From Bugula neritina (lineage: Eukaryota; Animalia; Bryozoa): 64,000 nt of DNA. How positions within the stretch are numbered: the first letter of the stretch is position 1; each line of letters starts with the position of its first letter. The notes beneath the pieces were generated by a model. It was not told where the DNA came from, searched no databases, and saw only the letters and a list, made by a program, of their open reading frames with translations. The position numbers and the translations under genes are program-made. Below are positions 34,301-64,000 of this stretch, in pieces. The stretch is taken from the NCBI GenBank assembly GCA_964035545.1, contig OZ037769.1:1240001-1304000 (forward strand). Direction: 5' to 3'.

Positions 34301-36757
34301 GCAGCTTCGACATCTCTGATAAGGTGAAGATCGCTGAGCCATGGCCTACGTGGCTGCAAAGCAAAAAGGAAGCCTCTACTAACCGAGAAGCAACGAAAAA
34401 GCAGGCTACTGGTGAGCCAGGGAACATGCTAGTTGGACAGTGAATGATTGGAAAAAAGCAATTTTTTCAGATGAATCCACATTTAATTTGAACAATCATG
34501 CAGGAAACTGTTTTGTTAGAAGATGTCAGTATGAGGAATATAACCCCCAATGCATAGTTCCAACAATTAGGCACCCTATCAGTGTTATGTTCTTGGGTTG
34601 CATAACATCAAAAAGTGTAGGTCGACTCAGTATTTGCTCTGGAATGATGAATGCCCAAAAATATATAGAAACCCCGGATGCTAAATTTCTTCTAACTATT
34701 AAAAACTTTTTTTCAAATAAATTTTACATATTTCAAGATGACAATGCACCATGCCATCGGGCAAAATCTGTTAAAGAGTGGATGAAAAGGCAAAGTGTCT
34801 CAATGCTTAGCTGGCCAGTACAAAGTCCCAACTTGAACCCAATAGAACATCTGTGGTCAAGAATGGCTAAAATAGTCTCCACACAGAAGCCAATAACTAA
34901 GGTGACACTCATAGAGTCCGTAATCCATGCATGGCATCATGTTGTGACTAAGGGCGAGTTGGAGAAGCTGTAGGAGTCGATGCTTTGTCGATGCCGACAT
35001 GTGATTAAGAAAAAAAACTGGCCAACAAAATATTGACACTAAAATTTAAAACACTGTGTTGTAATGCTGCTATAAGGTGTAGAACAAATCACATATGATA
35101 CTTTTTTTAATTTTAAATAAAATAGCACTATGTAATACAGTACACACAAATTGTGAGAGCATCAATTAATTCCCATATATGCATAGTAGCGCATTACTTT
35201 ATCCAAATTTGAGGAGGAAATAAAAAGTGACACTAAAATAATTTATATCACTGAGATAGGGAGATCTGAAGAACCACTTTGATAGGCACCAAACCTATGG
35301 AAATGTTTTTCTTATGTTGTAAAATTAGCTTGGAACATTGCAATACTGAAAAACAATAAAGCATTCTTAAACTTTTCCATAGCACTAAAATTTATATATT
35401 ATTGAACGTAGCTTATTGTTGAATTGGCAACACATATGTGCTAGGTACATCGTTATACATCATTCTAATTACCATAATATATTATAATGAGTTCACATCC
35501 AGTTATATATCTATCTTCTAGATGTGAGTAAAATAGTATTTGATTTAGACTACCGTTTCTTCCATGCTATAGCCTTAATTCTTAATTATATATGATAGAA
35601 TCATACCTATAAATATCACCTGTTGTTAATAGAAAATTTAAATTATGTGAAGTGCATTCATACACACCTATTAGACACTCCATCAAGTGGTTAGTTCATT
35701 AGTAGGACAGTATAATTCACTTGCTGATTACTCTTACTATACTGCATCACTTACCAAAATGGTCACCCTATTCTGTAAACATAGGGAGAGGAAAATCTAC
35801 TATATATATCAAACAATTTATAGCCTACACTACATGAATCAAGAGTGCATAGTAAATAATCAAATATTCGTAAGATGGCATTTTTTAGAACTGCTTATAT
35901 ACTTTTCAGTGAATATAGCAGAAGGAAGATATACATTCAGCAAGACTCATCATAACATATACGTGGTTAGTGGGAAAGCAGTAGATGTAAACCCTAGGTC
36001 GTTTTATAGAAGTGAAGACAAACCTGACCAGTGGTGGAGAGTTAAACTGGATGAGACTGTATATGTTAGAGTACTAGCTATTCGTAATAAAGATTGTGAG
36101 TATAATATTTTTGTTAATAATTTACAAAGCAGCTTATTTGCTACTTAATCAGAACTTAAGTATTAAAGAGTTGAAATAATTGCCCAACTATAGTTAGGGT
36201 AAATTTTAGGATAAGGTAGAGGCATATTTTAAAAAAAGAAAGATTACCATCGCAAAAGTGATAGAATGACATTTGTCGAACTACTTTAAATATTTAGAAA
36301 TCGGTTTTATTCAATTTAGTTAAGAGATTTAGGTTTCATTCTTTAAACGTAATGTAAATAGCTTTATCTTCTACTATTTTTACTCTATATAAACACCCAT
36401 AAGACTTTTGGGAAATAACATACAACTTTTTTTACGAACAATTCAATAAAATCCAATAAAATTCTTTTTTGTTTTACTTCAGCTGAGAGGTTTAAAGACG
36501 TATCAATCCTGTCATCAACACACTCCACAATAACAGAAGATCCAACACCTACAAGTTCAGAATGGACTCTGGTCATGTCTGGAATATCACGAGAATCAGA
36601 TAGAAGTTCTACAGAGCTTACATATAACTTTGATCTAACAAACGAGTTACAAACTAGACACATTGCACTCTACAGCTCTAATAGTATTGGACTGAGCATG
36701 CTAGAAGTTCAGATATTTGCATATGGTAAGTGGTTTAACGTTATATTTCATTTGTAC

Positions 36758-36849
<92 letters not shown>

Positions 36850-39800
36850 TCACAGAAGTTTATAGTCGCTATCCCTGTGAGAAACTCCTGATGGAAAGGG
36901 TTTTTGGTAAAATGGGCTGAAAGCTTATTTAATTGAAACTATCATTGAAATTAAGGGTTGACAGAAAGGGATTGCTTTATAGTTTACGGATGTTTAAACA
37001 AAACACTTTCCATTGGTTGTTTTTAGACTTGATGCTTACATGGCAAGACTCTTCAGCGATGTTGGCAGCAACCAGTAGTTCATGTTTGACTCTCACATGG
37101 ACACGACCAGATGCAGAATTTGGTGAAATATCTAATTATAGAGTTAGTATTTATATTACTTGTATTTACTATACTATCCATTCTCTTAAAACAATTCAAA
37201 GTTAGTTCAAGTTTATTAAAATACATGAGATAATTTATGTTTAGTACAAGTGTACTTCACAAGATGACTGGACTATCACAGAGAACACCGAGTTACAGAC
37301 ACAGATATGTGGATATTCCCATTCTACAGATGTACAGTGTGAGCTGGAAGCATGGAACAGTCATCAGTACAGTTCAATTACTACTTCTGTAGTTCAAACC
37401 CTCTGTCTAGGTATGGCTTGACATATAGAAGTCATTTGGGCAATTTGTTTTTTATGTAACAAAGGTCTGATTATAAGTATAATTTGATTATTTTATCTGA
37501 CATTATTATTACAATGAACGTATAGTAAAACTAGCTATTCAAACTTTTCCAGATATTTTCCTATATTAAAAGTATGTTTTATATAAATAATGTCAACATA
37601 ACTAGTTATTTCAGTCTCTATTAGAATATACGTAAGTTAGTTACATGCATGCTTTAAATAATTTAATTAAAAGCCAAATTTATTTCAGCTCCTTCAAAGC
37701 CAACAGCAGTTAAATTAACAAGCGCCACACCAGTTAGAATGGTGAGAGATGGTAAAGTTCAACTACTGTATTCTGTACAGTGGACTGTAAGTATTATTGG
37801 ATAAAGTGTAATGTTAAGATTTTCGCTTGATAGTCACAAAATGACGATTTGGATACTGCCCATTCCAAAACACTTCATTTATAAGAAAATGTTTTCAACA
37901 TGCTGAAATTTTGTATACATACTATAGCAAACTTACATAAATATATACTTGTAAAAGTAAAATAAATTATTATAGTTCAATAATGACTTAACATATAGCT
38001 ATTTTTGTCAAAACCAGTTAGAAGAAATTTAGAAAACATTATAGAACAGTGTAGGAACTCTTCCATTTAGCACATATTTTTATTTCCCTCTTTGGTCTTT
38101 TTAATGAGGTAATGATTCACAATTGTATATTTCCATTTCTTGCTTTAGACACCCCAAAGTTCAAACTGTGAAAATATAACAGGATATGATGTAAGATATC
38201 CAACAACTGAATCTACACCTACACAAGTCAGTAGTACCAGTACTAGCATACTGACAGGTGGTGATGTGGAGATAACTTTCTCTGTTAGAGCTAAGAACAA
38301 TGATCACCTTTACTCAGACTATGAGACAATTGTGTTTACATCTCCTAAATTAGGTGAGATTATATGACTATGTTCAATCTATTAACAATAAACTATTTTT
38401 GTATAGTAAATAATGTTTATATTTCAGAATTTGTTGCAGCTTAAAAACAAAATTTGTCAAATTGTTTTATTCAAAAGGTCCAATTTGGAGCTGTACTCCC
38501 CAGCTTTTTATCCACCCTTCTAGCAGTGAGTGTGTTTCTCTATCCTGGACTCTACCAGATTATTCTAATGGTGATATACAAAAGTATGAGGTGAGATATT
38601 CTCATTCTATATAGATTTTGTGTTAAACATTTTTTTTGTAATTATGTATTATTCAGCTGCAGCTGAATAATACATAATTGCAAAAACAAGTTTTCAGTTC
38701 TTATTGAAATGTTTCTAGATCAAGTGTACGGGTCAAACAGACTGGGCAGAAGTTGAGTCATCTAAACTGGACACACTTGCCTGTGGACTTTCTCCAGACA
38801 CAGAAGTAGAGTGTACAGTGAGAGCATGGAATGAACAGACATTCAGTGATGTCATTACATCGGATAAAATCAAGACTTACTGTTCAGGTATCTTTTTATA
38901 AAATACATTATTCTGGATAATCAAATTTTATTGCCTTATGTAAACATATTTCTGTAGGCAAATGATAAAAAGAGTCGAGAGACATATATTAGTTTATGAG
39001 ATTGTTTCAGGTAAAAATTGTATGATTTATAATTGTCCACTTTGTAACAGCTTCTACGTCTCCAGGAAGTATTCAGTTCAATGACAAAGGTTTAAAAACA
39101 GATAGTAGCAGAAAAAGAAGGGAATATCTCATTACTTGGCAGGTCTGTGTATATAGTTTATCAAATAATAATGTAACAGAGAACTATAATGTCGCGTATT
39201 ATATCCAATGCAAGTGTCCTTTTAAATTAAAGAAGCTATCATTTTTTCAATCAAAGAGTTTACTTACATTGTTCAAAGAAACAAAAAATTTCATTGTTTT
39301 TGTATTCAAATGCAACATGAGCATATTGATAGCTTACCTTGTTACATAACAGGCCCCATCTACAATAAACTGTGACAGTATAGCAGAGTATGAGATAAGA
39401 TTTCCAACATCCTCTTCTGATATAATAACAATGACCTCTAGAAGTATGACAGTGTATACAGAAGGTGATGTAGAGGTCAGCTTCTGGGTGAGAGCTGTGA
39501 ACAATGCTGGAAATATATCTGAACCTCGTATTAGGACTATTACTACTGCTACTTTCAGTAAGTCATTCTATGAATAAATGTATATATAACATACACATCT
39601 CTTTCAATAGGCATTTGTATTATATTTATTATATTATTGTATTTATGCAAGAAATAATTGGTTTTCTTCAAAATATATAATTTACCAGTAATATAATATG
39701 AATATGTGACTTAGTATATTAAATCCTTTTGATTAAGGCATTAACATATTTTTTTATATAAACTTCAGTTTATAAACCAAAATTTATTTATGAGTATTTT

Positions 39801-42800
39801 GAGGCCTAAGTCAACGATAGTTAATACCTAGTCACTTAGTATGCTTTTATTGATATATTCTTTAGTGTATTGCAGCCAACTGTTGCTTTAATAATTATTC
39901 CTTAAAAAATTGTTAAAATGCTATTAAAATCACTTTTACAAAAAGGTATAATACATTTATTTGCAATAGTTTCAAGCATTTTGGTTACAATTATAATTAT
40001 ATTTATAATAGGCTAAACATTCCTTACAAATCTTTCATCCTTCTGAAGTTCAAGTGCAAAGGGACTCTTTTTCAAGTAATGTATCCTCATGAAAATTACA
40101 AAATTAATTTCCTTGTGTACACAATTCTTTATCTCAAAACATTTCTAGGGCCCCAGATAGCACCAAAAGATTTCCAGTTGAAAGTTATCAACTCAAGTTG
40201 TATAAGGTTGTCATGGCAACCACCAGAATATCCTAATGGACCAATCACACAGTATGAGGTAAATATTTAAATAACAAATATATACACTGTAATTATTACA
40301 CATTTATTATAATGTTTGGTGGTGCTTGATACTTCAAAAATCAGTTGGTATATCATATACTTTAAATTTATCTCATATTTTTGTTTAGTTTAAAAAAGTC
40401 AAATTAAAGCCTAAAATTGTGACTCATTGTAGTACAAGTGTACTGGACACAGTGACTGGCTCGTTGTTGAGAAGACAACTCTTGACTCTGTAGTATGTGG
40501 ATATTCAGCCCATCAGCTGGTAGAATGTGAAATATTCGCTAAAAACAGCGAAAGAAAGAGTGATGGTGCGGAAAATAATGCAAAAACCTTTTGTGCAGGT
40601 AGTTGTCTATTGTCACTAATACCATAGCTCTGTTTGTTTGCTGTAATACATCAGGAACCTAAGTATAAATGTAGTGTAACTTCTTCTCATAACATATTTC
40701 AGCCCCAGAGTTCCACTTTGATTTGTCTCCATACATCCTAGGAGAAGCCTCTAACAACTCAGATGGTCTCGCAGAAATCAACTTGAATCTACTTAATTCC
40801 TCAGTGGTAGGTTTAATTTAAAGTAATAAGTTGATTTTTAAATTGCTTCCTATGATTAGTAACTTCATTTTTTGCAAAGTATTTTGTATGCAAACTTGAG
40901 TAAAGTCATCCAAGGAAATCTGCTACGATATACAAAAAAAAATTTAAACACTTTTGCTTAAATGCTTTTTTTATCGACTTATCATCATTCGTATTCTATG
41001 ACAAGTTAAATAAGTCTACTTTGTGTTTTAAAAGCAAAACATAACTTTAATTTTGTCTCAATTTTCACAGAACAGAATAAACTGTGCCTCACTCACAAGT
41101 CTAGAGTATAAACTCAGTGATCAAGACAACTACACAAACGCTGGAGAATTCATTTATGGACTACAACCCTACACTAACTACACTCTGTATATCAGAGCTA
41201 CTAATAATGAGCAATTTACTCAGAATCTAACTTGGACACTGCTGACCAAACAGCTGGGTAATTATTGCTTAAATTTACTAAATATCCAGACTATATTGTA
41301 TACACATATTATGTTGTGTTGAACTGGGCTCTTTTAATATTTATAAAAGATATTTATTTGTTTTCAATAATTTACCTACCAAAATGGCTTGATCTGAAAT
41401 ATTATCTTTACTATTTTAGCTCCAAGTGATTCTCCAAGAATAATCACAGACTTTGAAGCCAGCTGTGTGAATTTAACCATTTCTCCACCTGAGCATCCTA
41501 ATGGACTTTTAACACATTACTCTGTAAGTTGTAAACTAAAATGAGGGTTTGTTTAGAGCTTCAATATTTTCCAGTATTGAAATGACAATAGAACAGTAGT
41601 AATCACATTTTCAAAATGTTTTTTTTTCTATAGTATGCATGCAATGAGGTGAACATATTAGGAATAGATGAGAATCTCACCAAAGTTGTTAATAACATAT
41701 CTGTGAGTTATAATGAGAAAAAGGAAACTAAACTATCACTCTGTAACCTGACCTCAGCAACCAGAATTAGATGTACAGTAAGAGCTGTGAACAGTGCTGG
41801 AGAAAGTCCAGTGAAAGTGGTGGATGGATACACCAAACTTAAATGTAAGCAAAGCCACATTTAAACACTTTAAGCACATCAAAGATTGCAGTAGAAATAA
41901 TTTTCAGAAAAAATTTGTAGAAGCAGACTTTGAAGGATAAAATCAAAATTTGAGTTTACTTTGCTGAAAAAGCTATAATGTAAAAGAATACGCCATAAAT
42001 AAAGGAGAATATTGCATGATTTTACTATTTATCTCAACTAGCATTTCCAAATAAAGATTTTGTTCAGAGCAAACCAACTGTTCCAATTGTCAAGATATGG
42101 TTTATTACACTGTTTGAATATTTTTACTTTTTAAAATATTTAAAACAATTATTTTTAGAGATTATTTTATTTAAATTGATAAAAAAATTTCATCACAAAT
42201 GAAGTGTTAACTATAATTATATTCTAGTGAAAGAGGGAAATGATATTATAGCACAAATAGCGCCATCTTCTCTTCCTGGGGAGCTGCTTTTAATAACCAT
42301 TCCCACACCTTTTTTTGAGAATGGAGAAGTGAGGTTTGTCTAGTCTATATATAAAACACAAATTTACATGATGTGATAGTAATTGACAGGAAATGCCAGT
42401 TAAACACTCATCCAAAAATCGCAATGATTGTAATTTTTTTTCCAGCAAGTACCAAATAGTTCTCCAACAACAATCTCAGCAGAACAGAAAGAAGAGAGAT
42501 TTCTCATTAGAAAGTGACGAATGTAACTCAACTCAACTATTCCACTACTCTGTATCTCAAGAGAAAGGGTTAACATGTTACATAACAGCAGAGATAGATG
42601 TAGAGTCAGATGGTGAAACAACAGTCAATATTGGTGATGGTAAAACATATGGTGGATATGAGAATGTGGATCTGGTTCCTGGAGCAGATTACTTCTTGGT
42701 GGTTGTTATACTAGTAAAGGTAGAGGTAAGAGTTTGCTGAATGCTAAATTTCGTTGAAAAAGTTATCATATATAGATGCTTTTGAAACCGCAAACAATTT

Positions 42801-44210
42801 GCCCTCCTTCCTTACAAAGCAGAGGTAAATGTATATCTACTACATTTTATCATTCAGTACAGTGAATATTTCTGCACGGGGTTATTCAACTAAATTTTTA
42901 CCAGAAAATTAAACAAGTTTTAAATTATTGTTTTAAATTTTGACCACAATTTTATCAATTATTGTATTTTGTTCTATTTTTAGGCAGCTGAGGAGCTATT
43001 ACAATATTTCTTGCCCCTTCTTGAGTTCAAAAGTACGTATGAAGTTACGTTATCCATAAAAACTAAAAATGCTTATATGTTGCATTGCAGCAGTTTTTAC
43101 CTAAGCTTCTCTTCATGCACAAATATTATGTAGCTTTACATAATATATTTTCAAACTATTTATACTAATAATGTAACTATATTCATTGCTGTCTCATGAC
43201 AGATACTCTTTCACTGAAGTGTATAGAGCCTCCACCAGTAGCCAACTCAGATATCATAACCAGTGATACAGTCAACCTGGGTTCTGTGGTTATTTACTCT
43301 TGTAAAGTGGGGTTTACTAAAACTCAGGGAGAACAGCTGGCCTGTCAACTGGTGGGAGATAAAACTGAGTGGGTTGGAGAATTGACAGTCTGTAGAGCAG
43401 CTGACAAACCAAGTAACAAAACAGGTGCAACTAAAACCTGCGTGTTTAAGTTTTGTCTATATAATGTTTTAATTTATTTTTATGTTACTTGTTTAACTGT
43501 CAGCTCAGATTAAAATCACTCTGTTATGCTTTGATAAAACAAAAATAATTACTATCACACACCTCAATAAATTGCTCTTTTAAAAAAAAAAGTTTTCTTG
43601 CCATAAATTAAGCTACATGTAAACGTAATCACATAAAATGTCGATAAATTTAAAGCAGCCATAAATTGAACATATTGTATATTGTATATATTCACTATTC
43701 ACTATTCACTTTCAATAAAATTTAAGCACTCATGAAATGCAATCTAGAATCCTACTTTTAGGACTAATAGCTGGTTTGGTCACAGTCTCCTGTTTAGTGG
43801 TGGGTCTGGTTGTCGTGGTGGTGGTTCTGGTATGCAGAAGTCAGAGAAGTAAAGGAGCACCACCCTCAGAATTAGTGGATCTGGACACAATCAACCAATC
43901 AAAAAGAAGTGAGTATGAAGAACCAGACCTGATGTCTACAAGGACTTCTAGTAAAGTGATAGATGACACATACAGCAAGGTGGATGATGGAACCTATAGC
44001 AAGGTTGATGACAGTTATAGTAAGGTGGTTGATGACACATATAGTAAGGTGGTTGATGACACATACAGCAGACTTGATGGACCTGGGGATACCCATAATT
44101 ATGATAAGATTGAGATTTCTAACAGAAATAAAGATAACAAACCATCATCTTCTAATGTAGATGCAGCAGGTGGTGATCCTCTTTATATCAATAGACTGGG
44201 TTGTAATTAG
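30981..44210 (+). CDS. G3: complete receptor-class gene, signal peptide + 2 F-type-lectin-like + 7 FN3 + RPTP-type juxtamembrane module + sushi + TM + multi-tyrosine/ITAM tail
   Basis: ATG 30981. Lectin-like exons 31775-31960, 32606-32845, from 35910, 36483-36725. FN3 exons 37028 to about 41844. Juxtamembrane exons 42228-42333 and 42446-42725 (RKKR; [23 protein letters not shown]). Sushi exon about 43202-43423 ([17 protein letters not shown]...W..C). Last exon 43762-44210 with [27 protein letters not shown] and Tyr-rich tail. Confidence 0.9.
33019..35386 (+). mobile_element. Decayed Tc1-family (DD34E) DNA transposon in the G3 intron between lectin domains 1 and 2
   Basis: Absent from the homologous introns of G2 (about 16330) and G4 (about 47365). 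Transposase from ATG 33370 (HTH-like [16 protein letters not shown]) to WPTKY* at 35036, with [14 protein letters not shown] and [11 protein letters not shown] (34 residues between D and E). Contains stops and frameshifts. Right end ttttccatagcact resembles a Tc1 TIR; no left TIR seen. Confidence 0.9.
33507..34149 (-). mobile_element. Internally deleted non-autonomous LINE (CR1/L2/Rex1-Babar-like) nested in the Tc1 transposase
   Basis: Splits transposase KKF|(M)[10 protein letters not shown]. Minus strand encodes [22 protein letters not shown] (APE endonuclease start) joined to [21 protein letters not shown] (ORF2 end), then a 3' UTR, AATAAA and an (AATC)n tail. Possible 3-bp TAT duplication. 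Confidence 0.75.
36758..36845. repeat. (TA)n microsatellite (shorter versions at about 17786-17849, 48798-48823, 63871-63893)
   Basis: Direct sequence; same intron in four paralogs. Confidence 0.95.
43762..43835 (+). other. Transmembrane helix of G3 (G4 equivalent from 55718)
   Basis: About 24 uncharged hydrophobic residues followed by the basic stop-transfer CRSQRSK. Confidence 0.9.
43962..44111 (+). repeat. Coding minisatellite: 5 x (D)D(T/G/S)YS(K/R)(V/L) units of 21-24 bp, ending in ITAM DDTYSRL-x8-YDKI
   Basis: Repeated gatgacacata(c/t)ag(c/t)aaggtg; translation in ORF 43737-44210. Confidence 0.9.
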
Positions 44211-51800: not shown

Positions 51801-54800
51801 TGAATTTCAAGTGCAAAATGACTCATTTTCAAGTGATGTATTTTTATAAAAATCACAAAATTTATTTCCTTGGGTACACAACTCTTTATCTCAAAACATT
51901 TCTAGGGCCCCAGATAACACCACGAGATTTCCAGTTGCAATTTATCAACTCGAGTTGTATAAGGTTGTCATGGCAACCACCGAAATATCCCAATGGACCA
52001 ATCACACAATATGAGGTAATCGGTTACACAACGAATACATATACATTGTAATTATTACATAATTATTATGACGTTTGGTGATGCTTCATTTTTCAAAAAT
52101 GTACTCAAAATGTTAAATTAGGATTAAATTAGATCAAATGAAGATATGAGATAAATTTAAAGAATATGTTATATTAGTATAATATACTTTAAATTTATCT
52201 CATTTTTTGTCTAAAAGAGTCATAAATTGAAACCTAAACTTGTGACTCATTGTAGTACAAGTGTACTGGACACAGTGACTGGCTCATTGTTGAGAAGGCA
52301 ACTCTTGACTCTGTAAAATGTGGATATTCAGCCAATCAGCTGGTAGAATGCGAGATATTTGCTAGAAATAGCAAAGGAAAGAGTGATAGTGCCAGAAAGG
52401 ATATAAGAATTGTCTGTGCAGGTAAACTATCTATTGTCAAATTATGACAACTTTTTTTGTTTGCGTTAAAGTATCGGAAACTTCAGTATAAATGTAGTTC
52501 AAATTAAGTCCTCAAATTATCTGGATGGAATATATGTAGTGCTATTAAGGTAAATCTATATAGACAATAATGTGATGTAACTATTCAATGATGTAGTATA
52601 ATCTCTTCTCATAACATATTTCATATTGCAGTAATACATTAGGAACCTAAGTATAAATGTAGTATAATCTCTTCTCATAACATATTTCAGCTCCAGAGTT
52701 CCCCCTTGATTTGTCTCCATACATCCTAGAAGTATCTTCCATCAACTCTGATGGTCTGGCAGAAATCAACTTGACTCTACCTAATTCCTCAGTGGTAGGT
52801 TTAATTTAAAGTACTAAATTACTTTTCAAATTGCTGCCTATGAATAGTTACTTCATTTTTTGCGAAACATTTTGTATACAAACTTGAGTAAAGTCATCCA
52901 AAGAAATCCGCTACGATATACACAAAAAAAATTAAAATACTTCTGCTTAAATGTTTTTTTATGCTTTTTTTCTCGACTTATCACCATTCGTATTCTATGA
53001 TAAGTTAAATAAGCTTACTTTGTGTTTTAAAACCAAAACATAACTTTAATTTTGTCTCAATTTTTACAGATCAGAATAAACTGTGCCTCACTCACAAGTC
53101 TAGAGTATAAACTCAGTGATCAAGACAACTACACGAATGCTGGAGAAGTTATTTATGGACTACAACCCTACACTAACTACACTCTGTATATCAGAGCTAC
53201 TAATAATGAGCAATTTACTCAGAATCTGACTTGGACACTGCTGACAAAACAGCTGGGTAATTATTGCTTAAATTACAAAATATCAAGACTATATTGTATA
53301 TATTGTGTTGAACTGGGCTCTTTTAGTATTTATAAAAAATATTTATTTGTTTTCAATAAATTATCTACCAAAATGACTTGATCTGAAATATTATCCTTAC
53401 TATTTTAGCTCCAAGTGATTCTCCTAGAATAATCACAGACTTTGAAGCCAGCTGTGTGAATTTAACCATTTCTCCACCTGAGCATCCTAATGGACTTTTA
53501 ACACATTACTCTGTAAGTTTTAAACTGAAATGAGGGTGTTAAAAGCTTTAATATTTTCCAATATTCAAGTGGCAATAAAACAGCATTAATCACGTTTTCA
53601 AAATGTCTTTTCTTCTATAGTATGCATGCAACGAGGTGAACATAGGAATAGATGAGAATCTCACCAAAGTTGTTGACAACATATCTGTGAGTTATGAGGA
53701 AAAGGAAACTAAACTATCCCTTTGTAACCTGACTTCAGCAACTAGAATTAGATGTACAGTAAGAGCTGTGAACAGTGCTGGAGAAAGTCCAGTGAAAGTG
53801 GTGGATGGATACACCAGACTTAAACGTAAGTATATGGCCACATTTAAACATTTAATCATATCAAAGTTTGCAGTAGAAAAAATTTGAGAGAAAATTTGAC
53901 GGAGCAGACTTTAAAGTATGAAGTCAAAATTTAAGTTTGTTTTGTTGAAAAACCAATGTAAAAGATCAGGAAAATATTGCATGATTTTACTTTTTCTCTC
54001 TATTAGCGTTTCCAAATGAAGATTTTATTCAGACTAAACCAAACTGTTCCAATTGTCAAGATATGGTTTATTACACTGTGTAAATATTTTTACTTTTTAA
54101 ATTTATTAATCACATAAATTAAAGCGATTATTCTTTAGAGATTATTTTATTTAAATTGTTAAAAAAAATTCATCACAAATGAAGTGTTAACTATAATTAT
54201 ATTTTAGTGAAAGAGGGAAATGATATTATAGCACAAATAGCGCCATCTTCTTTTCCTGGGGAGCCGCTTTTAATAACCATTCCCACACCTTTTTTTGAGA
54301 ATGGAAAAGTGAGGTTAGTCTAGTTTATATAATACACAAATTCACATGATGTTATAGTAATTGACAGGAAATGTCAGTTAAACACTCATCCAAAGATCGC
54401 AATGATTGTAATGTTTTTTACAGCAAGTACCAAATAGTTCTCCAACAGCAATCTCAACAGAACAGAAAGAAGAGGGATTTCTCATTAGAAGGTGACGGAT
54501 GTAACTCAACTCAACTATTCAACTACTTTGTGTCTCAAGAGAAAGGGTTAACATGTTACATAACAGCAGAGATAGATGTAGAGTCAGATGGTGATACAAC
54601 AGTCAATATTGGTGATGGTAAAACATATGGTGGGTATGAGAATGTGGATCTGGTTCCTGGAGCAGACTACTTCTTGATGGTTGTCGTACTAGTAAAGGTA
54701 GAGGTAAGAGTTTGCTGAATGCTAAATTTGTTGAAAAATTATCATGCATGTGGATGCTTTTGACAGCGCAAACAATTAGCCCTATTTCCTTGCTATAAGC

Positions 54801-56166
54801 CGAGGTAAATGTATATCTACTACATTTTATTATTTAGTACAGTGAATATTTCTGCACGGGATTATTCAACTAAATTTTTACCAGAAAATAAAAAAGCTTG
54901 AAATTATTGTTTTAAATATTGACCACAATTTTATTAATTATTGGATTTTGTTCTATTTTTAGGCAGCTGAGGATTTATTACAATATTTCTTGCCCCATGT
55001 TGAGTTCAAAAGTATGTATGAAGCTACGTTATCCATAAAAATTAAAAATGCTTATATGTTGCATTGCAGCAGTTTTTACCTAAGCTTCTCTTCATGCACA
55101 ATTATTATGTAGCATTACATAATATATTCTCAAATTATCTATACTAATAATGTAACTATATACATTGCTGTCTCATGACAGATACTCTTTCACTGAAGTG
55201 TATGGAGCCTCCACCAGTAGCCAACTCAGATCTCATAATCAGTGATACAGTCAACCTGGGTTCTGTGGTTATTTACTCTTGTAAAGTTGGGTTTACTAAA
55301 ACTCAGGGAGAGCAGCTGGTCTGTCAACTGATGGGAGATGAAGCTGAGTGGGTTGGGGAGTTGACAGTCTGTAGAGCAGCTGACAAAACAGGTAACAAAA
55401 CAGGTGCAACTATAAATCGTGCATGTTTAAATTGTGTCTATATGTTTTAATTTATTTTCATGTTATTTGTTTACCTGTCAGCTCGGGTTAAAATCACTCT
55501 GTTATGCTGTGATAAAACAAAAATAATTACTATCACGTACACACATCAATTAATTGCTTTTTTTAAGAAAAATTTTCTTAGAAAAATTCTCTTGCCGTAA
55601 AGCTACATGTAAATATAAAGCAGCCATAAATTGAGCATATATGTACAGTATATATTCACTAGAGCTTTCAATAAAATTTAAGCATTCATGAAATGCGATC
55701 TATAATGCTTCTTTTAGGACTGATAGCTGGTTTGGTCACAGTCTCTTGTCTAGTGGTGGGTCTGGTTGTGGTGGTGGTGGTTCTGGTATGCAGAAGTCAG
55801 AGAAGTACAGGAGCACCGCCCTCAGAAGTAGTGAATCTGGACACAATAAACCAATCAAAAAGAAGTGAGTATGAAGAACCAGACCTGATGTCTAAAAGGA
55901 CTTCTAGTAAAGTGATAGATGACACATACAGCAAGGTGGATGATGGAACCTATAGCAAGGTTGATGACAGTTATAGTAAGGTGGTTGATGACACATACAG
56001 TAAGGTGGTTGATGACACATACAGCAGACTTGATGGACCTGAGGACACCCATAATTATGATAAGATTGAGATTTCTAACAGAAATAAAGATAACAAACCA
56101 TCATCTTCTAATGTAGATGCAGCAAGTTGTGATCCTCTTTATATCAATAGACTGGGTTGTAATTAG
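45675..56166 (+). CDS. G4: complete receptor-class paralog of G3 (same architecture, no Tc1 in the lectin intron)
   Basis: ATG 45675. Lectin-like exons 46263-46448, 46948-47184, 47905-48090, 48498-48737. FN3, juxtamembrane (ORF 54371-54718) and sushi (ORF 55175-55450) exons colinear with G3. TM/tail exon 55718-56166. Confidence 0.9.
55918..56067 (+). repeat. Same tyrosine-motif coding repeat and ITAM in G4
   Basis: ORF 55693-56166: [50 protein letters not shown]. Confidence 0.9.
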
Positions 56167-57725: not shown

Positions 57726-60162
57726 TTAATAGCTGTGGTATAATTTCTTCTCATGTGATTGTGAATATAACTCAGTCTATTCATATATTACTGTTCTATT
57801 ACAGACATACTAATGAATGCTCAAACTAAATATAAAATATATCATGATTACTAATATGCCCATTGAGTTGTGTTATAACATTGTGATGTAAAGCCTAAAA
57901 ACTAACTTAGAAAAGATCTCTAAGACCAGCAAATTTACTATTGATAAGGAAGTTGCTTTAACTTGAAACTTGACTTGTATATTACTTTAGCTTGATTCCA
58001 AATAGCTATAGCCTAATTTCTACTCATGTGACTGTGGATCTAACTACTTCTCTGTCTATACAAATTCTTTTGTTCTATTTTCTTTTACTAATGAATTCTC
58101 AAACTGAATAGAAAGCCTTGTATTAGCAAAAGCAATAAAAAGCTGACAAAAGATCTATAGAACAGATCTATTATTATATAGAAACTCAACAATGAACAGG
58201 GAAGTTGTTTTAGACTAAACTTCTTTACACACAATATATTCTATTGTGAGTTAAACTATAATATGTTCTACATAGCACTCCAGTATTAGAGGGTAGAGTA
58301 GGTTGAAATACAGCCTAGAGTAAAATTTTAAAGTAGACTATTCATATTGTGTTGAGTGAAAGAAGACAACTTATTAGTTACAGTATCTATGAAAGTCAAC
58401 TAAGCAGAAGATGATGTTGACTAGAATATTGTTGTGTCTACTAGTTATACCACTTCTAGTAGTAAACTCTTACTCTCCAGGTATGTGTGTAGTGTGAGTA
58501 GCAAGAGTTAATACAGTATATTTTTTGTAACTAATGCTGAAAACAGTTCTTTGAAAACAATCAGCAATGTTTATGGTGATTATATGGCTGTAGGTTTTTG
58601 TTTGTTACCAGAGTTGTAAAAAAGGGGCAACTTTACAAAAACATATAGTTTTATTAGAAAGCAAAATAGAATATCAAAAGGGATCCCATAAACCAAACCT
58701 AGAGAATACAGAGTTTTATTATGTACTAAAGTCAGTATATGGGTAGAATGACTATACTTCTTTAGTTTTTCAATCAGTGTACAGCCTTAATGTAAAATAA
58801 TAGATACGCAACTGTTTTCATAATCACTAGACCAAATTTCTTTCGATCTCATTCACTTATGATAGTAAAATGGAAAAATGTTATTGTATGCTACTATATC
58901 AGTGAACCTAGCCAAAGAGAGGGCCACGCAGGCAAGCACTGCCTATGGTAATGGTGATGGGTATTCTGCAAACAAGGCAGTAGATGGGGACACTGACACA
59001 TATTTCTACAGTGCTGTGAAACCCGATGATTGGTGGAGAGTGGATTTTGATGATGTAATAATTGTTAGAAGAATAGTCATTGACACTGCAGCCAGTAAGT
59101 ATTGATCTCTGAAACCAAATAAAATTGTTTTCAAGTTAATACAAGTAATACCAGTAAGCCATCATTGTCAGCTCATATTGTTTTAATTGCTTCATAGGGG
59201 TTTCAGCTAATATTATATACATTTATATGAAATCGAAAAAAAATATGTATTTAAATTGAGGCAATGTCTATAAGCTTTTACTGCAAGTGTGAAAACTATA
59301 CTAACTTGGATGTTTAATGGTTAGACACTGAGATAATGGTTGACTATATTATAAGTGAAATATCATTAATATATAACGTAGTAGTTTACAATGCTATGTA
59401 TACTGTACGAAGTACACAGGCTCATGAGTTGTGTTGAATGCTTAGTTTGTGATGACAACATATTGTGAATGAGGCAGTATAGTTGAAAACAGTATAAAGC
59501 AAATTGCTTCTGCTAACACTATAGTGTTTTGGTAAAACAATTAGGGAAAATATATTATAAACTCTAGTTAAACATGTATCTTTGTACTTGGATCATTGAA
59601 CATGCAATGGTTTGATATTTCACACTATTTTGAAGACAACAGATCACACTGTATATCGTGAAATAGTAAAAAAGCACAATAATCCAATGCGTACAATCTC
59701 TGTATACTATTTTAAACCATAATTTCGTCCAACTTTTCTATTTTTAGCTCCAGCATTTACCGATGTCTTTATTCTATCCACTTCTATGATGGAACCCGCT
59801 GATGTACCTCACCCAGAGAGTTCAGACTGGAGAGTTCTACAGTCTGGAGTAACACGCACAGAAAGTGCTTTTTTATACCATATTCAAATTTGACTTTGCC
59901 CTAGATGAGAATGTAGAAGCTAGACACATTGCTCTCTACAGTTCTACTGGTGGACTACAGTTCAATGAGGTAGAGGTCTATGATGCAGGTGAGTGAAGTA
60001 GTTGCTGAAAATTAATTTACTGCCCAGAAATTTTTTACACCATTTTTTCTATCGATTTAGAGGTGGTTTTCAGTTGAAAAACTAGAACACTGTTTAATTA
60101 TTTGTATAATAACCTTAAATTTCATCAGGCTACAGTGTGTTAACATGTGTAATGTAGAGATT

Positions 60163-62501
60163 TTTATGTATGTTATTTACTAGCTATTTCTTGTAAGTTC
60201 TTAGTGTTTTCCTGCAAGTTTTATATATCAAAATGACCCTTAGAGTGTGCACTACAATTGCCACCCTATAGATTTCTACAGTTTTGATGTTTTCTACCCA
60301 TTTTCGGGCTATTTACATAAGCAGCTAGGGAAGTGCAACTCTTGTATTTTTATGCTTCCAAAATTCCTGGCTTTTGTCAGCCACAAAAAGATGAACAGTG
60401 AACTTTGACTTTGTGCATGACATCATGATATTATAATTAAAGCATGATTTCCTTCCATAATTTAAAATCTGTGAGCTTTTACTATAGGTGCACACTTGAG
60501 TGCTGCGCATAGACAAAAGGAGAGCAGTAAGTCTTACTTCAGAATCAAAGTCTGTCGTGGTTTTTTTACATAAAGAAGGTTTTTCAATCAGAAAAATATC
60601 TGAAAAAGGGGGCATGGCAAAGACAACCGCATATCAAATTATCAAGAAATTTATTGATTGATTGATTGATTGATTTTATTTCTATCACTAACATGATATA
60701 TATGTTGTGAAAAAAAAGTGTTAAATACTGATGCCTATGATATTAAAAATGGCAACGGTGTACTATATACATGGCTTAAAAATAGGAGTAAAAAGTCTCT
60801 GAGGCTAGAAGTTCAATTAACAAAAAGTATTGTACAAGTTTATTTAGCTTGAGTGCTGCCTGGCGTATAAAAGAATCTCTGCCCCAAGTGCTTCTGTATT
60901 TAATAATAATCTGTGCAGTTCATCTAGCTTGTAGCGTGCAGTTTGTGCATTGGTCAGTATGATGGCTGGCAGGGGAGCTCTTGAGTTTTTTCCTTTTTTT
61001 CTTGTTCTAAGTATTTCAGGGTCAACATTTTTAACTAGAGTTTTGAATTGTCAATTTCATATATCCTTCAGATAGTCTCTTTTAATAGAGGTTTTAACTT
61101 CCAGCAGAGAGTTAATGTCCATGTATGTTAGACTCGTCACACCTCTTAGGTGGTATACATGAGGGGGAATAAGAGTAGCACCAGTAATAACAACGGCTGC
61201 AATAGCTGCGCCATTATGTTAGCAGAGTTGTAAGAGCTATTGAAAACACAACCTCTCTCTATGGAGACTGGCAGTGTAGCAGACCGACCTCGAAGTGAAT
61301 GACCAAGAACTAGCACACCCAGAGATGACAAAATTCTCATTAGAATCAGCAAGAATTGGATTGCCACAAAACAAGTCGTGAGTTGGCAAAAGAATGGTCA
61401 GAATCAACAGGAACAACAGCTTGGACATCTCTGATAAGTCGAAGATTGCTGAGTCAAGGTCTATGTAACTGCAAAGCAAGAAGGAAGCCTCTACTGAGAA
61501 GCAACGAAAAAGCAGGCTACCGTGGGCCAGGGAGCATGCTAGTTGGACAATGAATGATTGGAAAAAAGTAATTTTTTCAGATGAATCCACATTTAAAATG
61601 AACAATCATGCAGGAAACTGTTTTGTTAGAAGATGCCAGTATGAGGAGTATAACCCCCAATGCATAGTTCCAACAATTAGGCACCCTATCAGTGTTATGT
61701 TCTGGGGTTGCATATAAACATCAATAAGTGTAAGTTGACTCAGTATTTGCTCTGGAATGATGAATGCCCAAAAATATATAGAAACCCTGAATGCTAAACT
61801 TCTTCCAACTATAAAAAAAAAAATTTCAAATAAAGTTTACATATTTCAAGATGACAATGCACCATGCAATCGGGCAAAAAACTGTTAAAGAGTGGATGAA
61901 AAGGCAGTGTGTCTCAATGCTTAGCTGGCCAGTACAAAGTCCCAACTTGAACCCAAAAGAAAATCTGTGTTCAAGAATGGCTAAAATAGTCTCCTCACAG
62001 AAGCCAATAACTAGGGTGACACTCATAGAGTATGTAATTCATGCATGGCATCATGTTGTGACTGAAGGCGAGTTGGAGAAGCTGTAGGAGTCGATGCTTT
62101 GTCGATACCGACATGTGATTAAGAAAAAAAACTGGCCAACAAAATATTGACACTAAAATTTAAAACATTGTGTTGTAATGCTGCTATAAGGTGTAGAACA
62201 AATCACATATGATACTTTTTTAAAATTTTAAATAAAATAGCACTATGTAATACAGTACACACAAATTGTGAGAGCATCAATTAATTCCCATATATGCATA
62301 GTAGCGCATTGCTTCATCTAAATTTTGGAAAGAAATAAAAAGTGACACTAAAATAATTTATATCACTGAGAAAAAGAGATCTGAAGAATCATTTTGATAG
62401 GCACCATGTCTATGGAATTGTTTTTCTTATGTTGTAAAATTAGCTTGGAACATTGCAATACTGAAAAACAATAACGCATTCTTAAACTTTTCCATAGCAC
62501 T
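60163..62501 (+). mobile_element. Second copy of the same Tc1 insertion at the same intron position in G5 (copied with the gene)
   Basis: Matching junctions and the same nested insert; additional frameshifts (ORF fragments 61356-61553, 61851-62087). Confidence 0.9.
60655..61262 (-). mobile_element. Second copy of the nested bipartite LINE in G5
   Basis: Homologous to 33507-34149, with a (TTGA)n tail at the left end. Confidence 0.75.
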
Positions 62502-64000
62502 AAAATTTATATATTATTGAACGTAGCTTATTGTTGAATTGGCAACACATATGTGCTAGGTACATCGTTATACATCATTCTAATTACCATAATATATTAT
62601 AATGAGTTCACATTCAGTTATATATCTATCTTCTAGATGTGAGTAAAATAGTATTTGATTTAGACTACCGTTTCTTCCATGCTATAGCCTTAATTCTTAA
62701 TTATATATGATAGAATCATACCTATAAATATCACCTGTTGTTAATAGAAAATTTAAATTATGTGAAGTGCATTCATACACACCTATTAGACACTCCATCA
62801 AGTGGTTAGTTCATTAGTAGGACAGTATAATTCACTTACAGATTATTCTTACTATACTGCATCACTTACCAAAATGGTCACCTTATTCTGTAAACATAGG
62901 GAGAGGAAAATCTACTATATATATCAAACAATTTATAGCCTACACTACATGAATCAAGAGTGCATGCATAGTAAATAATCAAATATTCGTAAGATGGCAT
63001 TTTTTAGAACTGCTTATATACTTTTCAGTGAATATAGCAGAAGGAAGATATACATTCAGCAAGACTCATCTTAACATATACGTGGTTAGTGGGAAAGCAG
63101 TAGATGTAAACCCTAGGTCGTTTTATAGAAGTGAAGACAAACCTGATCAGTGGTGGAGAGTTAAACTGAATGAGACTGTATATGTTAGAGTACTAGCTAT
63201 TCGTAATAAAGATTGTGAGTATAATATTTTTGTTAATAATTTACAAAGCAGCTTATTTGCTACTTAATCAGAACTTGTATTAAAGAGTTGAAATAATTGC
63301 CCAACTATAGTTAGGGTAAATTTTAGGATAAGGTAGAGGCATATTTTAAAAAAAGAAAGATTACCATCGCAAAAGTGATAGAATGACATTTGTCGAACTA
63401 CTTTAAATATTTAGGAATCGGTTTTATTCAATTTAGTTAAGAGATTTAGGTTTCATTCTTTAAACGTAATGTAAATAGCTTTATCTTCTACTATTTTTAC
63501 TCTAAACACCCATAAGACTTTTGGGAAATAACATACAACTTTTTTTACGAACAATTCAATAAAATCCAATAAAATTCTTTTTTGTTTTACTTCAGCTGAG
63601 AGGTTTAAAGACGTATCAATCCTGTCATCAACACACTCCACAATAACAGAAGATCCAACACCTACAAGTTCAGAATGGACTCTGGTCATGTCTGGGATAT
63701 CACGAGAATCAGATAGAAGTTCTACAGAGCTTACATATAACTTTGATCTAACAAACGAGTTACAAACTAGACACATTGCTCTCTACAGCTCTAATAGTAT
63801 TGGACTGAGCATGCTAGAAGTTCAGATATTTGCATATGGTAAGTGGTTTAACGTTATATTTCATTTGTACATATATATATATATATATATATACACTCAC
63901 AGAAGTTTATAGTCGCTATCCCTGTGAGAAACTCCTGATGGAAAGGGTTTTTGGTAAAATTGGCTGAAAGCTTATTTAATTGAAACTATCATTGAAATTA

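Follow-up and report, generated by a model that had tools for sequence, protein, structure and literature searches.

The bryozoan Bugula neritina carries a gene, here called G3, whose last exon encodes a transmembrane (TM) helix and a predicted cytoplasmic tail with eight tyrosines, and this tail is probably a phosphotyrosine scaffold of some kind. The gene lies in a stretch of 64,000 nucleotides (assembly GCA_964035545.1, contig OZ037769.1, positions 1,240,001 to 1,304,000, forward strand), which we call the window and to which all positions without a prefix refer. Judged from its exons, G3 is best read as a type I receptor with lectin-like domains, FN3 repeats, a membrane-proximal Fn3 domain of phosphatase type and a Sushi domain. 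We favour a phosphotyrosine tail because its skeleton, Tyr-x8-HxY(D/E)K(V/I) together with EYEE and YxN sites, recurs in about 14 paralogs behind Sushi exons. That the distal pair of tyrosines, YSRL-x8-YDKI, really works as an ITAM (immunoreceptor tyrosine-based activation motif) is a narrower claim from the same sequences, and one to which we would give somewhat less than an even chance.

The tail exon of G3 and its tyrosine motifs

The exon, its 5´ neighbour and the features of the tail are as follows:

43202-43424, + strand: Sushi (CCP) exon, 5´ neighbour of the G3 tail exon (Pfam Sushi, E 3.9e-05, above cut-off)
43762-44210, + strand: terminal coding exon of G3 (AG acceptor 43760-43761, phase 1, TAA stop 44208-44210)
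43764-43835, + strand: TM helix of 24 uncharged hydrophobic residues, followed by basic RSQRSK (translation, frame 3 of 43764-44207)
43836-44207, + strand: predicted cytoplasmic tail of 124 residues with eight tyrosines (translation; AlphaFold2 confidence)
43908-43925, + strand: SEYEEP site, tyrosine codon 43914-43916 (family form EYEEV/EYEDI)
43962-44075, + strand: five tandem DDxYS(K/R)(V/L) units of 7-8 residues each (Tandem Repeats Finder and spacing table)
44064-44111, + strand: ITAM-like pair YSRL-x8-YDKI (regular-expression match)
44184-44192, + strand: C-terminal YIN, a YxN pattern of Grb2 type (translation)

A polypyrimidine tract and an AG stand directly 5´ of the exon start at 43762. 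The Sushi exon has a G|GT donor at 43424/43425 and, joined to the acceptor of the tail exon, gives the junction ..NKT-G-LIAG..; the GenBank model KAF6017473.1 uses the identical junction (..KTG|FIAGLV..) and includes the whole tail exon. An earlier reading of this DNA from its letters (the sequence-only reading) had taken the exon as coding, and the frame open from acceptor to stop, the junction in KAF6017473.1 and a conservation better than that of the flanks all bear this out.

AlphaFold2 models the exon product as a helix at residues 2-30, with a predicted local distance difference test score (pLDDT) of up to 81, and gives pLDDT <50 from residue 34 to the C-terminus; the tail is probably disordered. 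We place it on the cytoplasmic side on three grounds: the FN3 and Sushi exons upstream are of extracellular type, the splice junction given above joins the Sushi exon to the tail exon, and the residues after the helix are basic; the topology is thus predicted from domain types and charge. Sulfation of the acidic tyrosine units was rejected, the tail being placed on the cytoplasmic side. Database searches were run exon by exon. Pfam matches of the exon to DAP10, Cadherin_C_2 and domains of unknown function (DUF) were rejected as sub-cut-off and caused by the hydrophobic helix; for DAP10 (PF07213) the score was 17.5 against a cut-off of 22.9 bits, and the helix alone was matched. YIN also occurs in the YINM of DAP10, and the G3 tail is without the Met.

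The tail tyrosines stand, in order, in SEYEEP, in five DDxYS(K/R)(V/L) units, in HNYDKI and in PLYIN, and translation (frame 3, 43764-44207) confirms all eight, with contexts and coordinates, as the sequence-only reading had given them. Its YIN as a Grb2-type YxN pattern was likewise read correctly from the sequence, and YxN recurs near the C-terminus in two further tail subfamilies (YQN, YEN; see below). Its likening of YEEP to sites of Nck/Crk type is not supported here, the family form EYEEV being a Src-SH2-type motif. The SEYEEP tyrosine is gone in the pseudogene L008 discussed below (SEHRDP).

The pair YSRL-x8-YDKI had been offered as a fit to the ITAM consensus, and it does satisfy the strict pattern YxxL/I-x6-8-YxxL/I at 44064-44111. 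YSRL is the last repeat unit and the first half of the pair at once. Tandem Repeats Finder places the array at 43962-44070 with a period of 24, 4.7 copies, 77% matches and a score of 127, and also reports periods of 45 and 69. “Minisatellite”, the earlier term for it, is a generous one for a coding repeat of five units that is short, degenerate and in frame. Neighbouring units are 3-4 residues apart and units two apart are separated by 11-12 residues; from their sequence the five look like amplifications of the first half-site. In 100,000 shuffles of the tail residues, the strict ITAM pattern arose by chance in 0.9%, or in 0.4% with the repeats collapsed to one unit. At least six Yxx[LIV] motifs, six being the observed number, arose in 0.02% of shuffles, a figure that overstates the case since the units are copies of one another. 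A reading of the units as inhibitory or switch motifs (immunoreceptor tyrosine-based inhibitory motif, ITIM, or switch motif, ITSM) was ruled out by Asp at -2 and Thr at -1.

Conservation of the tail and change in its repeat number

A second gene in the window, G4, ends in a twin of this exon:

55718-56166, + strand: twin terminal exon of G4, with repeats at 55918-56031, the ITAM-like pair at 56020-56067 and YIN at 56140-56148

The frame at 55720-56163 of G4 contains all eight tail tyrosines as in G3. The sequence-only reading had stressed this conservation, which is true and of low weight, because the two exons are 96.7% identical at the nucleotide level. Their alignment has zero gaps, against 88% identity in the upstream intron and 79% in the 3´ flank, both with many gaps. 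Between G3 and L015, a copy from another B. neritina lineage, the exon is 90% and the flanks 82% identical, and the sole indel in the exon is an in-frame one of 45 bp; the same in-frame 45-bp gap separates the G3 repeat from KAF6017473.1. In comparisons with G4 and with the Virginia-lineage copy, the tail has a ratio of nonsynonymous to synonymous substitution rates (dN/dS) of 0.24-0.57; with the near-identical L006, only 12 changes away, dN/dS is 0.85. Comparisons within the subfamily are shallow in divergence. On these estimates constraint on the tail is moderate, as expected if short motifs alone matter.

A fourth tail copy, L008 (C5:8289074), is 71% identical, has five units and a synonymous divergence (dS) of ~0.48, and was at one stage taken as evidence of deep conservation. 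This was withdrawn: its Sushi exon has two in-frame stops, which makes it a pseudogene, and its counterpart in another lineage, L046, on a contig of the Joint Genome Institute (JGI), has a 2-bp frameshift and flanks as similar as the former coding sequence. The tyrosines retained in L008 are not evidence of selection, because L008 is a pseudogene and its counterpart evolves like its flanks.

The database proteins nearest to the tail are the hypothetical B. neritina proteins KAF6017473.1, KAF6028137.1 and EB796_015805, which stem from a draft genome from Virginia annotated by AUGUSTUS with transcriptome hints (PMC7576161). All three have three repeat units, as do three metagenome-derived copies (JGI samples 3300002729 and 3300003318; origin assigned from similarity alone). 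Four units occur in P0002 and five in the window copies, L008, P0015 and P0017; in P0017 (L047) two of the five are without tyrosine, and a premature stop follows YEKI. Copies with five units and copies with three differ by exactly two units (45 bp), a length that is also among the periods found by Tandem Repeats Finder. Each of the four copies in this genome has five units, and no slippage is visible among these paralogs. The earlier proposal that valence could change by repeat slippage is thus supported, as history, by the three, four and five units across the species complex and finds nothing among the four copies of this assembly. Comparison of the copies supports a change of unit valence by gain and loss of units in the history of the complex.

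The strict ITAM with its x8 spacing is present in 12 of 13 sequences of the window's subfamily. Two of the 12 (L008, P0015) are pseudogenes and one (P0017) is truncated; in the thirteenth sequence, EB796_015805 (P0018), the motif is broken to YSRP. A genome search with the distant tail L009 led to two more subfamilies, one of four chromosome 5 genes and one of about ten chromosome 1 genes. In all three subfamilies the TM/tail exon has a Sushi exon 200-500 bp upstream of it. At least four genes of the two further subfamilies also have an Fn3_PTPRU-like exon and a basic, cleavage-type site before the Sushi exon. The deeper paralog tails (~14, ~27% identity) retain EYEE(V/I) near the membrane and, further on, a tyrosine followed after 8-10 residues by (H)xY(D/E)K(V/I). 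Both tyrosines of the pair are retained, with +3 residues M, T, P or V and a spacing of 8 or 10. The first half-site reads YESI, YESM, YETT or YEIP, and V occupies the last +3 position; YESM..YEKV occurs in two of the four L009-type paralogs and YETT/YEIP-x10 in the chromosome 1 cluster. By this comparison the two-tyrosine module is old, and the L/I pair that defines an ITAM is found only in the window's subfamily (and in L009, bar the final V). The label “canonical ITAM” in the sequence-only reading therefore fits the window's subfamily, where the strict pattern holds, and does not extend to YSRP in EB796_015805 or to YESM..YEKV and YETT/YEIP-x10 elsewhere.

A profile search with the tail in a representative library of 1.84 billion proteins gave only Bugula-type matches at E <1e-7. 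Weaker matches were rejected as unrelated low-complexity repeats (P0005-P0009) or bivalve proteins with the repeat motif alone, and the own-genome matches L010-L014 as non-coding minisatellites. A metagenome scan for further tail copies returned no relatives, a blank of little weight. Among bivalves, FSP39_000677 proteins of Pinctada imbricata (P0010, P0020, P0024, P0027) have up to a dozen DDPY(S/N)KVK units, which repeat the short bryozoan motif in otherwise unrelated sequence, and DDxY(S/N)KV may be a docking unit that recurs among lophotrochozoans.

Candidate readers, known counterparts and competing explanations

At least 46 SH2 exon matches are present in the genome. A Shark-type gene (C7:14371225-14378329) has, on one strand, two SH2 exons with three ankyrin-repeat exons between them, followed by kinase exons; its kinase domain is closest to SYK and ZAP-70, and the FLVR/FLIR Arg is kept in both SH2 domains. 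The genome further encodes Csk (SH2 exon at C4:21875138, closest to CSK with E 2e-26, and a kinase exon 2 kb downstream), Fes/Fer and an SHP-type protein with tandem SH2 domains followed by phosphatase exons. Grb2 and Src orthologues are assumed to be present, as in animals generally. Small contigs (C10, C33, C66, C133, C176, C201 and similar) gave intronless full-length matches to kinase and phosphatase domains in which in-frame TAA and TAG are numerous and TGA is nearly absent; they look like DNA from an organism in which TAA and TAG are sense codons, e.g. a ciliate on the colony, retained among the unplaced scaffolds. The Shark architecture is the partner of the ITAM of Draper in flies, as cited in PMC9546547.

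The mechanism that we put forward, as possible rather than probable, is that of a self-contained receptor tail, phosphorylated on tyrosine when the receptor clusters. Ligand would cluster the receptor, and a Src-type kinase would phosphorylate the acidic-flanked tyrosines. The distal pair YSRL-x8-YDKI would then dock the tandem SH2 domains of a kinase of Shark/Syk type, and the C-terminal YIN would recruit a Grb2-type adaptor. The DDxYSKV units would serve as additional docking sites for single SH2 domains, their number (3 to 5) setting the valence and being altered by in-frame gain or loss of units. We infer every phosphorylation and binding step of this scheme.

Counterparts with the motif in the receptor's own tail have been established or proposed in several invertebrates. 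CgIgR of the oyster Crassostrea gigas, a single-pass receptor and also lophotrochozoan, has DYTEL-x8-YEKL, very similar in form to the G3 pair, and is reported to bind CgSyk (PMC6994640). It differs from G3 in its immunoglobulin-domain ectodomain, its single motif and the lack of tandem tyrosine units, and no sequence homology between the G3 tail and CgIgR was detected. Draper of Drosophila likewise has its own ITAM, read by the SH2-ankyrin-SH2 kinase Shark, a type that B. neritina encodes (cited in PMC9546547); unlike G3, it has an ectodomain of EGF repeats, a longer spacer, an extra NPxY site and no repeat array. Hydractinia Alr resembles G3 in being a set of clustered, duplicated genes of a colonial invertebrate, in which ITAM or ITIM patterns were found in silico and in which both Syk and Shark are present (PMC9546547). 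The animal is a cnidarian, however, the ectodomains are immunoglobulin-like and the tails vary too much to be aligned; phosphatase-type twins have not been described there.

The ITAM subunits of vertebrates (FcRγ, DAP12, CD3, CD79) share with G3 the order D/E-x-x-Y-x-x-L/I, spacer, Y-x-x-L/I (PMC4536121). The classical vertebrate motif is always split over two exons and resides in small adaptors whose TM helix has an acidic residue (PMC4536121), whereas in G3 it occupies one exon, behind an uncharged TM helix on the ligand-binding chain itself, and has a spacer of 8, not 7. The G3 motif thus departs from the vertebrate ITAM gene structure and, on sequence, is an analogue like those of Draper and CgIgR and not a homologue. 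We regard the G3 tail, from its sequence, as a real, lineage-specific case of the ITAM-like tails known in Drosophila, oyster and Hydractinia, and not as a new kind. Literature searches found nothing comparable described for Bryozoa.

Several observations weigh against a working ITAM. Only one small subfamily has the strict motif, in the chromosome 1 cluster the spacing is 10, and one GenBank copy reads YSRP. Constraint on the whole tail is only moderate (dN/dS 0.24-0.57, and 0.85 against L006 from 12 changes), and L008, the diverged copy from which deep conservation had been read, is a pseudogene that evolves as its flanks do. The motif's first half is no more than the last repeat unit, and adjacent repeat tyrosines, 3-4 residues apart, are too close for the bite of one tandem-SH2 protein. 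A somewhat unlikely though serious alternative is that the ITAM match is incidental in a phosphotyrosine scaffold that docks single SH2 domains in the manner of PAG1 or SCIMP, with a Src-type kinase at YEE, Csk at YS(K/R)V/L and Grb2 at YIN. Such a tail would tune Src-family kinase activity, possibly against or with the phosphatase paralogs that share its ectodomain. Cbp/PAG1 and SCIMP have a disordered tail with tyrosines of YEE(I/V), YS-x-V and YxN type, a combination that the probably disordered G3 tail resembles, and in Cbp/PAG the YEEI/V sites bind Src SH2 and one YSSV site binds Csk (PMC3492796). Across the family the first site has the consensus EYEEV/EYEDI, and the repeated YSKV matches YSSV at least as well as it matches an ITAM half-site. 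Csk is encoded, as noted above, and the deeper paralogs conserve single-tyrosine motifs only, not the L/I pair. Language-model leads to SCIMP and to vaccinia A36R scored 0.81, under the 0.9 level, and are weak. Set against this, the x8 spacing and the +3 L/I of the distal pair are near-universal in the subfamily, and the putative fit of YSKV to Csk draws on a single known site and on peptide-library data. By the features of the Cbp/PAG type, G3 has five YS(K/R)(V/L) units, with YEEP in the window copies where YEEV/I would be expected and EYEEV in paralogs; it has no sequence homology to PAG. Unlike G3, Cbp/PAG1 and SCIMP have almost no ectodomain, are palmitoylated and contain one Csk site, not five, and the likeness is at the level of motifs only.

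Phosphorylation need not be involved at all if YSKV, YSRL and YDKI are YxxΦ sorting signals for adaptors of AP-2 type, set among acidic S-x-x-D sites of CK2 type, by which a lectin-like receptor is internalised or sent to endosomes, with more units giving higher avidity. Yxx[LIV] fits six of the eight tyrosines, each unit has a Ser with Asp at +3, and the ectodomain has lectin-like exons. YxRL sequences, which YSRL resembles, are classical endocytic signals. We consider this distinctly unlikely: the most widely conserved sites, EYEE-V/P and YxN, are poor YxxΦ signals (EYEEV excepted), acidic residues at -1 to -3 are a feature of kinase substrates that AP-2 does not need, and the genes sit among tyrosine phosphatase genes and swap ectodomains with them. 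It is improbable that the motifs have no specific role and merely reflect duplication of one tyrosine unit in a fast-evolving, low-complexity tail of a birth-and-death family. Dead or decaying copies do exist (L008, with stops in its Sushi exon; L046, with a frameshift; L047, with two tyrosine-less units and a premature stop), the dN/dS of the tail is moderately <1, and by our estimate the tyrosine columns are not significantly more conserved than others at shallow divergence. The exon nevertheless stands clearly above its intron and 3´ flank in conservation, is free of indels and belongs to a family in which the tyrosine skeleton is kept in paralogs only ~27% identical. Very improbable is that the exon is skipped or internally spliced and the tail not translated as read. 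The AUGUSTUS model EB796_015805 (P0018) does join the Fn3_PTPRU exon just past the TM helix, which gives a TM-less protein with tail and is probably a mis-model; even so, it translates the entire tail, KAF6017473.1 includes the whole exon, and the frame is open from acceptor to stop in three cluster copies and several copies of another lineage.

Phosphatase-type neighbours and a possible paired-receptor layout

The ectodomain of G3 connects the gene to its phosphatase-type neighbours:

35000-42706, + strand: ectodomain-coding part of G3, with lectin-like, FN3 and Fn3_PTPRU exons (blastn against G5; Pfam)

The membrane-proximal Fn3_PTPRU exon of G3 (Pfam E 6.5e-10) includes an RKKR site. The gene G5 starts at 58869 and runs past the window (C5:1298869-1317000; L037, L038). 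G3 and G4 align with it collinearly, introns included, at a nucleotide identity of 83-98%, and blastn of G3 against G5 gives blocks of 97.6%, 91.4% and 82.8%. The homology stops with the Fn3_PTPRU exon, at 42706 in G3, just before the Sushi exon, and at 54684 in G4. From there on, G5 continues with a TM exon of its own and two protein tyrosine phosphatase (PTP) domains (exons at C5:1312689-1315477), whereas G3 and G4 have Sushi, TM and tyrosine tail and end at the stop of the tail exon, without a PTP domain. Compared with receptor-type phosphatases with Fn3_PTPRU and PTP_tm, whose ectodomain exons G3 matches up to 42706 in G5, G3 and G4 have thus exchanged the TM and catalytic exons for a Sushi-TM-tail module. 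They are not receptor-type tyrosine phosphatases, the PTP exons being in neighbours such as G5 only. A third tail gene (C5:1328554) is again followed 3´ by phosphatase exons (C5:1342656-1344666), and the chromosome 5 tail subfamily (2.22-2.25 Mb) is also flanked by phosphatase genes.

Paired receptors are typically marked by near-identical ectodomains joined to different cytoplasmic modules, and G3 and G4 together with G5 look like such a layout. Because near-identical ectodomains carry PTP modules in G5, we argue that the tail belongs to phosphotyrosine signalling. The similarity between G3 and G5 is graded, with 97.6% identity in the 5´ part (35000-36780 against 62114-63893), then 91%, then 83%, and G4 and G5 are 83-89% identical throughout, a pattern which suggests that a phosphatase-type gene and a tail-type gene have recently undergone gene conversion or recombination with each other. 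Remnants of Tc1/mariner-type transposases at 34440-34973, upstream of G3, and at 61344-62084, in the 5´ region of G5, may mark duplication units. The first catalytic domain of G5 reads HCSAGVGQTG, with Gln at the position of the C(X)5R signature that is otherwise invariably Arg. The phosphatase gene that follows in the cluster (C5:1342937) does have Arg there, as do 13 other PTP exons sampled at other places in the genome, and judged from this residue G5 may be catalytically impaired. Across the genome PTP exons form large tandem expansions (C1:3.96-4.23 Mb, C6:8.02-8.43 Mb, C5:0.49-2.31 Mb, C3:7.6-8.1 Mb), with at least 149 matches, many in regular arrays. On the + strand of the window, TM-like exons occur in G3 and G4 alone. 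None was found on that strand for the genes G1 and G2 (1-28315), which may be secreted, incomplete or otherwise organised.

We know of no described immune receptors in Bryozoa. One intriguing, if speculative and rather unlikely, extension is that these genes are a lineage-specific paired-receptor system built on receptor-phosphatase ectodomains, in which one ligand would be read with opposite signs and the gain tuned by unit number, and which would be a candidate device of this colonial animal for non-self recognition or allorecognition. Three aspects of the arrangement are new. The first half-site of the ITAM-like pair seems to have been multiplied into a short coding repeat, with numbers of units that vary between copies, a module of Sushi exon and TM/tail exon is common to at least 15 genes in three subfamilies with an ectodomain of receptor-phosphatase type, and tail-type genes alternate with phosphatase-type genes with which they share ectodomains almost base for base. 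If the tyrosines act as sorting signals instead, the family would be of modest interest. If they are phosphorylated, it would offer a simple natural system for relating the number of docking sites to receptor output, and would show how pairs of activating and opposing receptors arise outside vertebrates.

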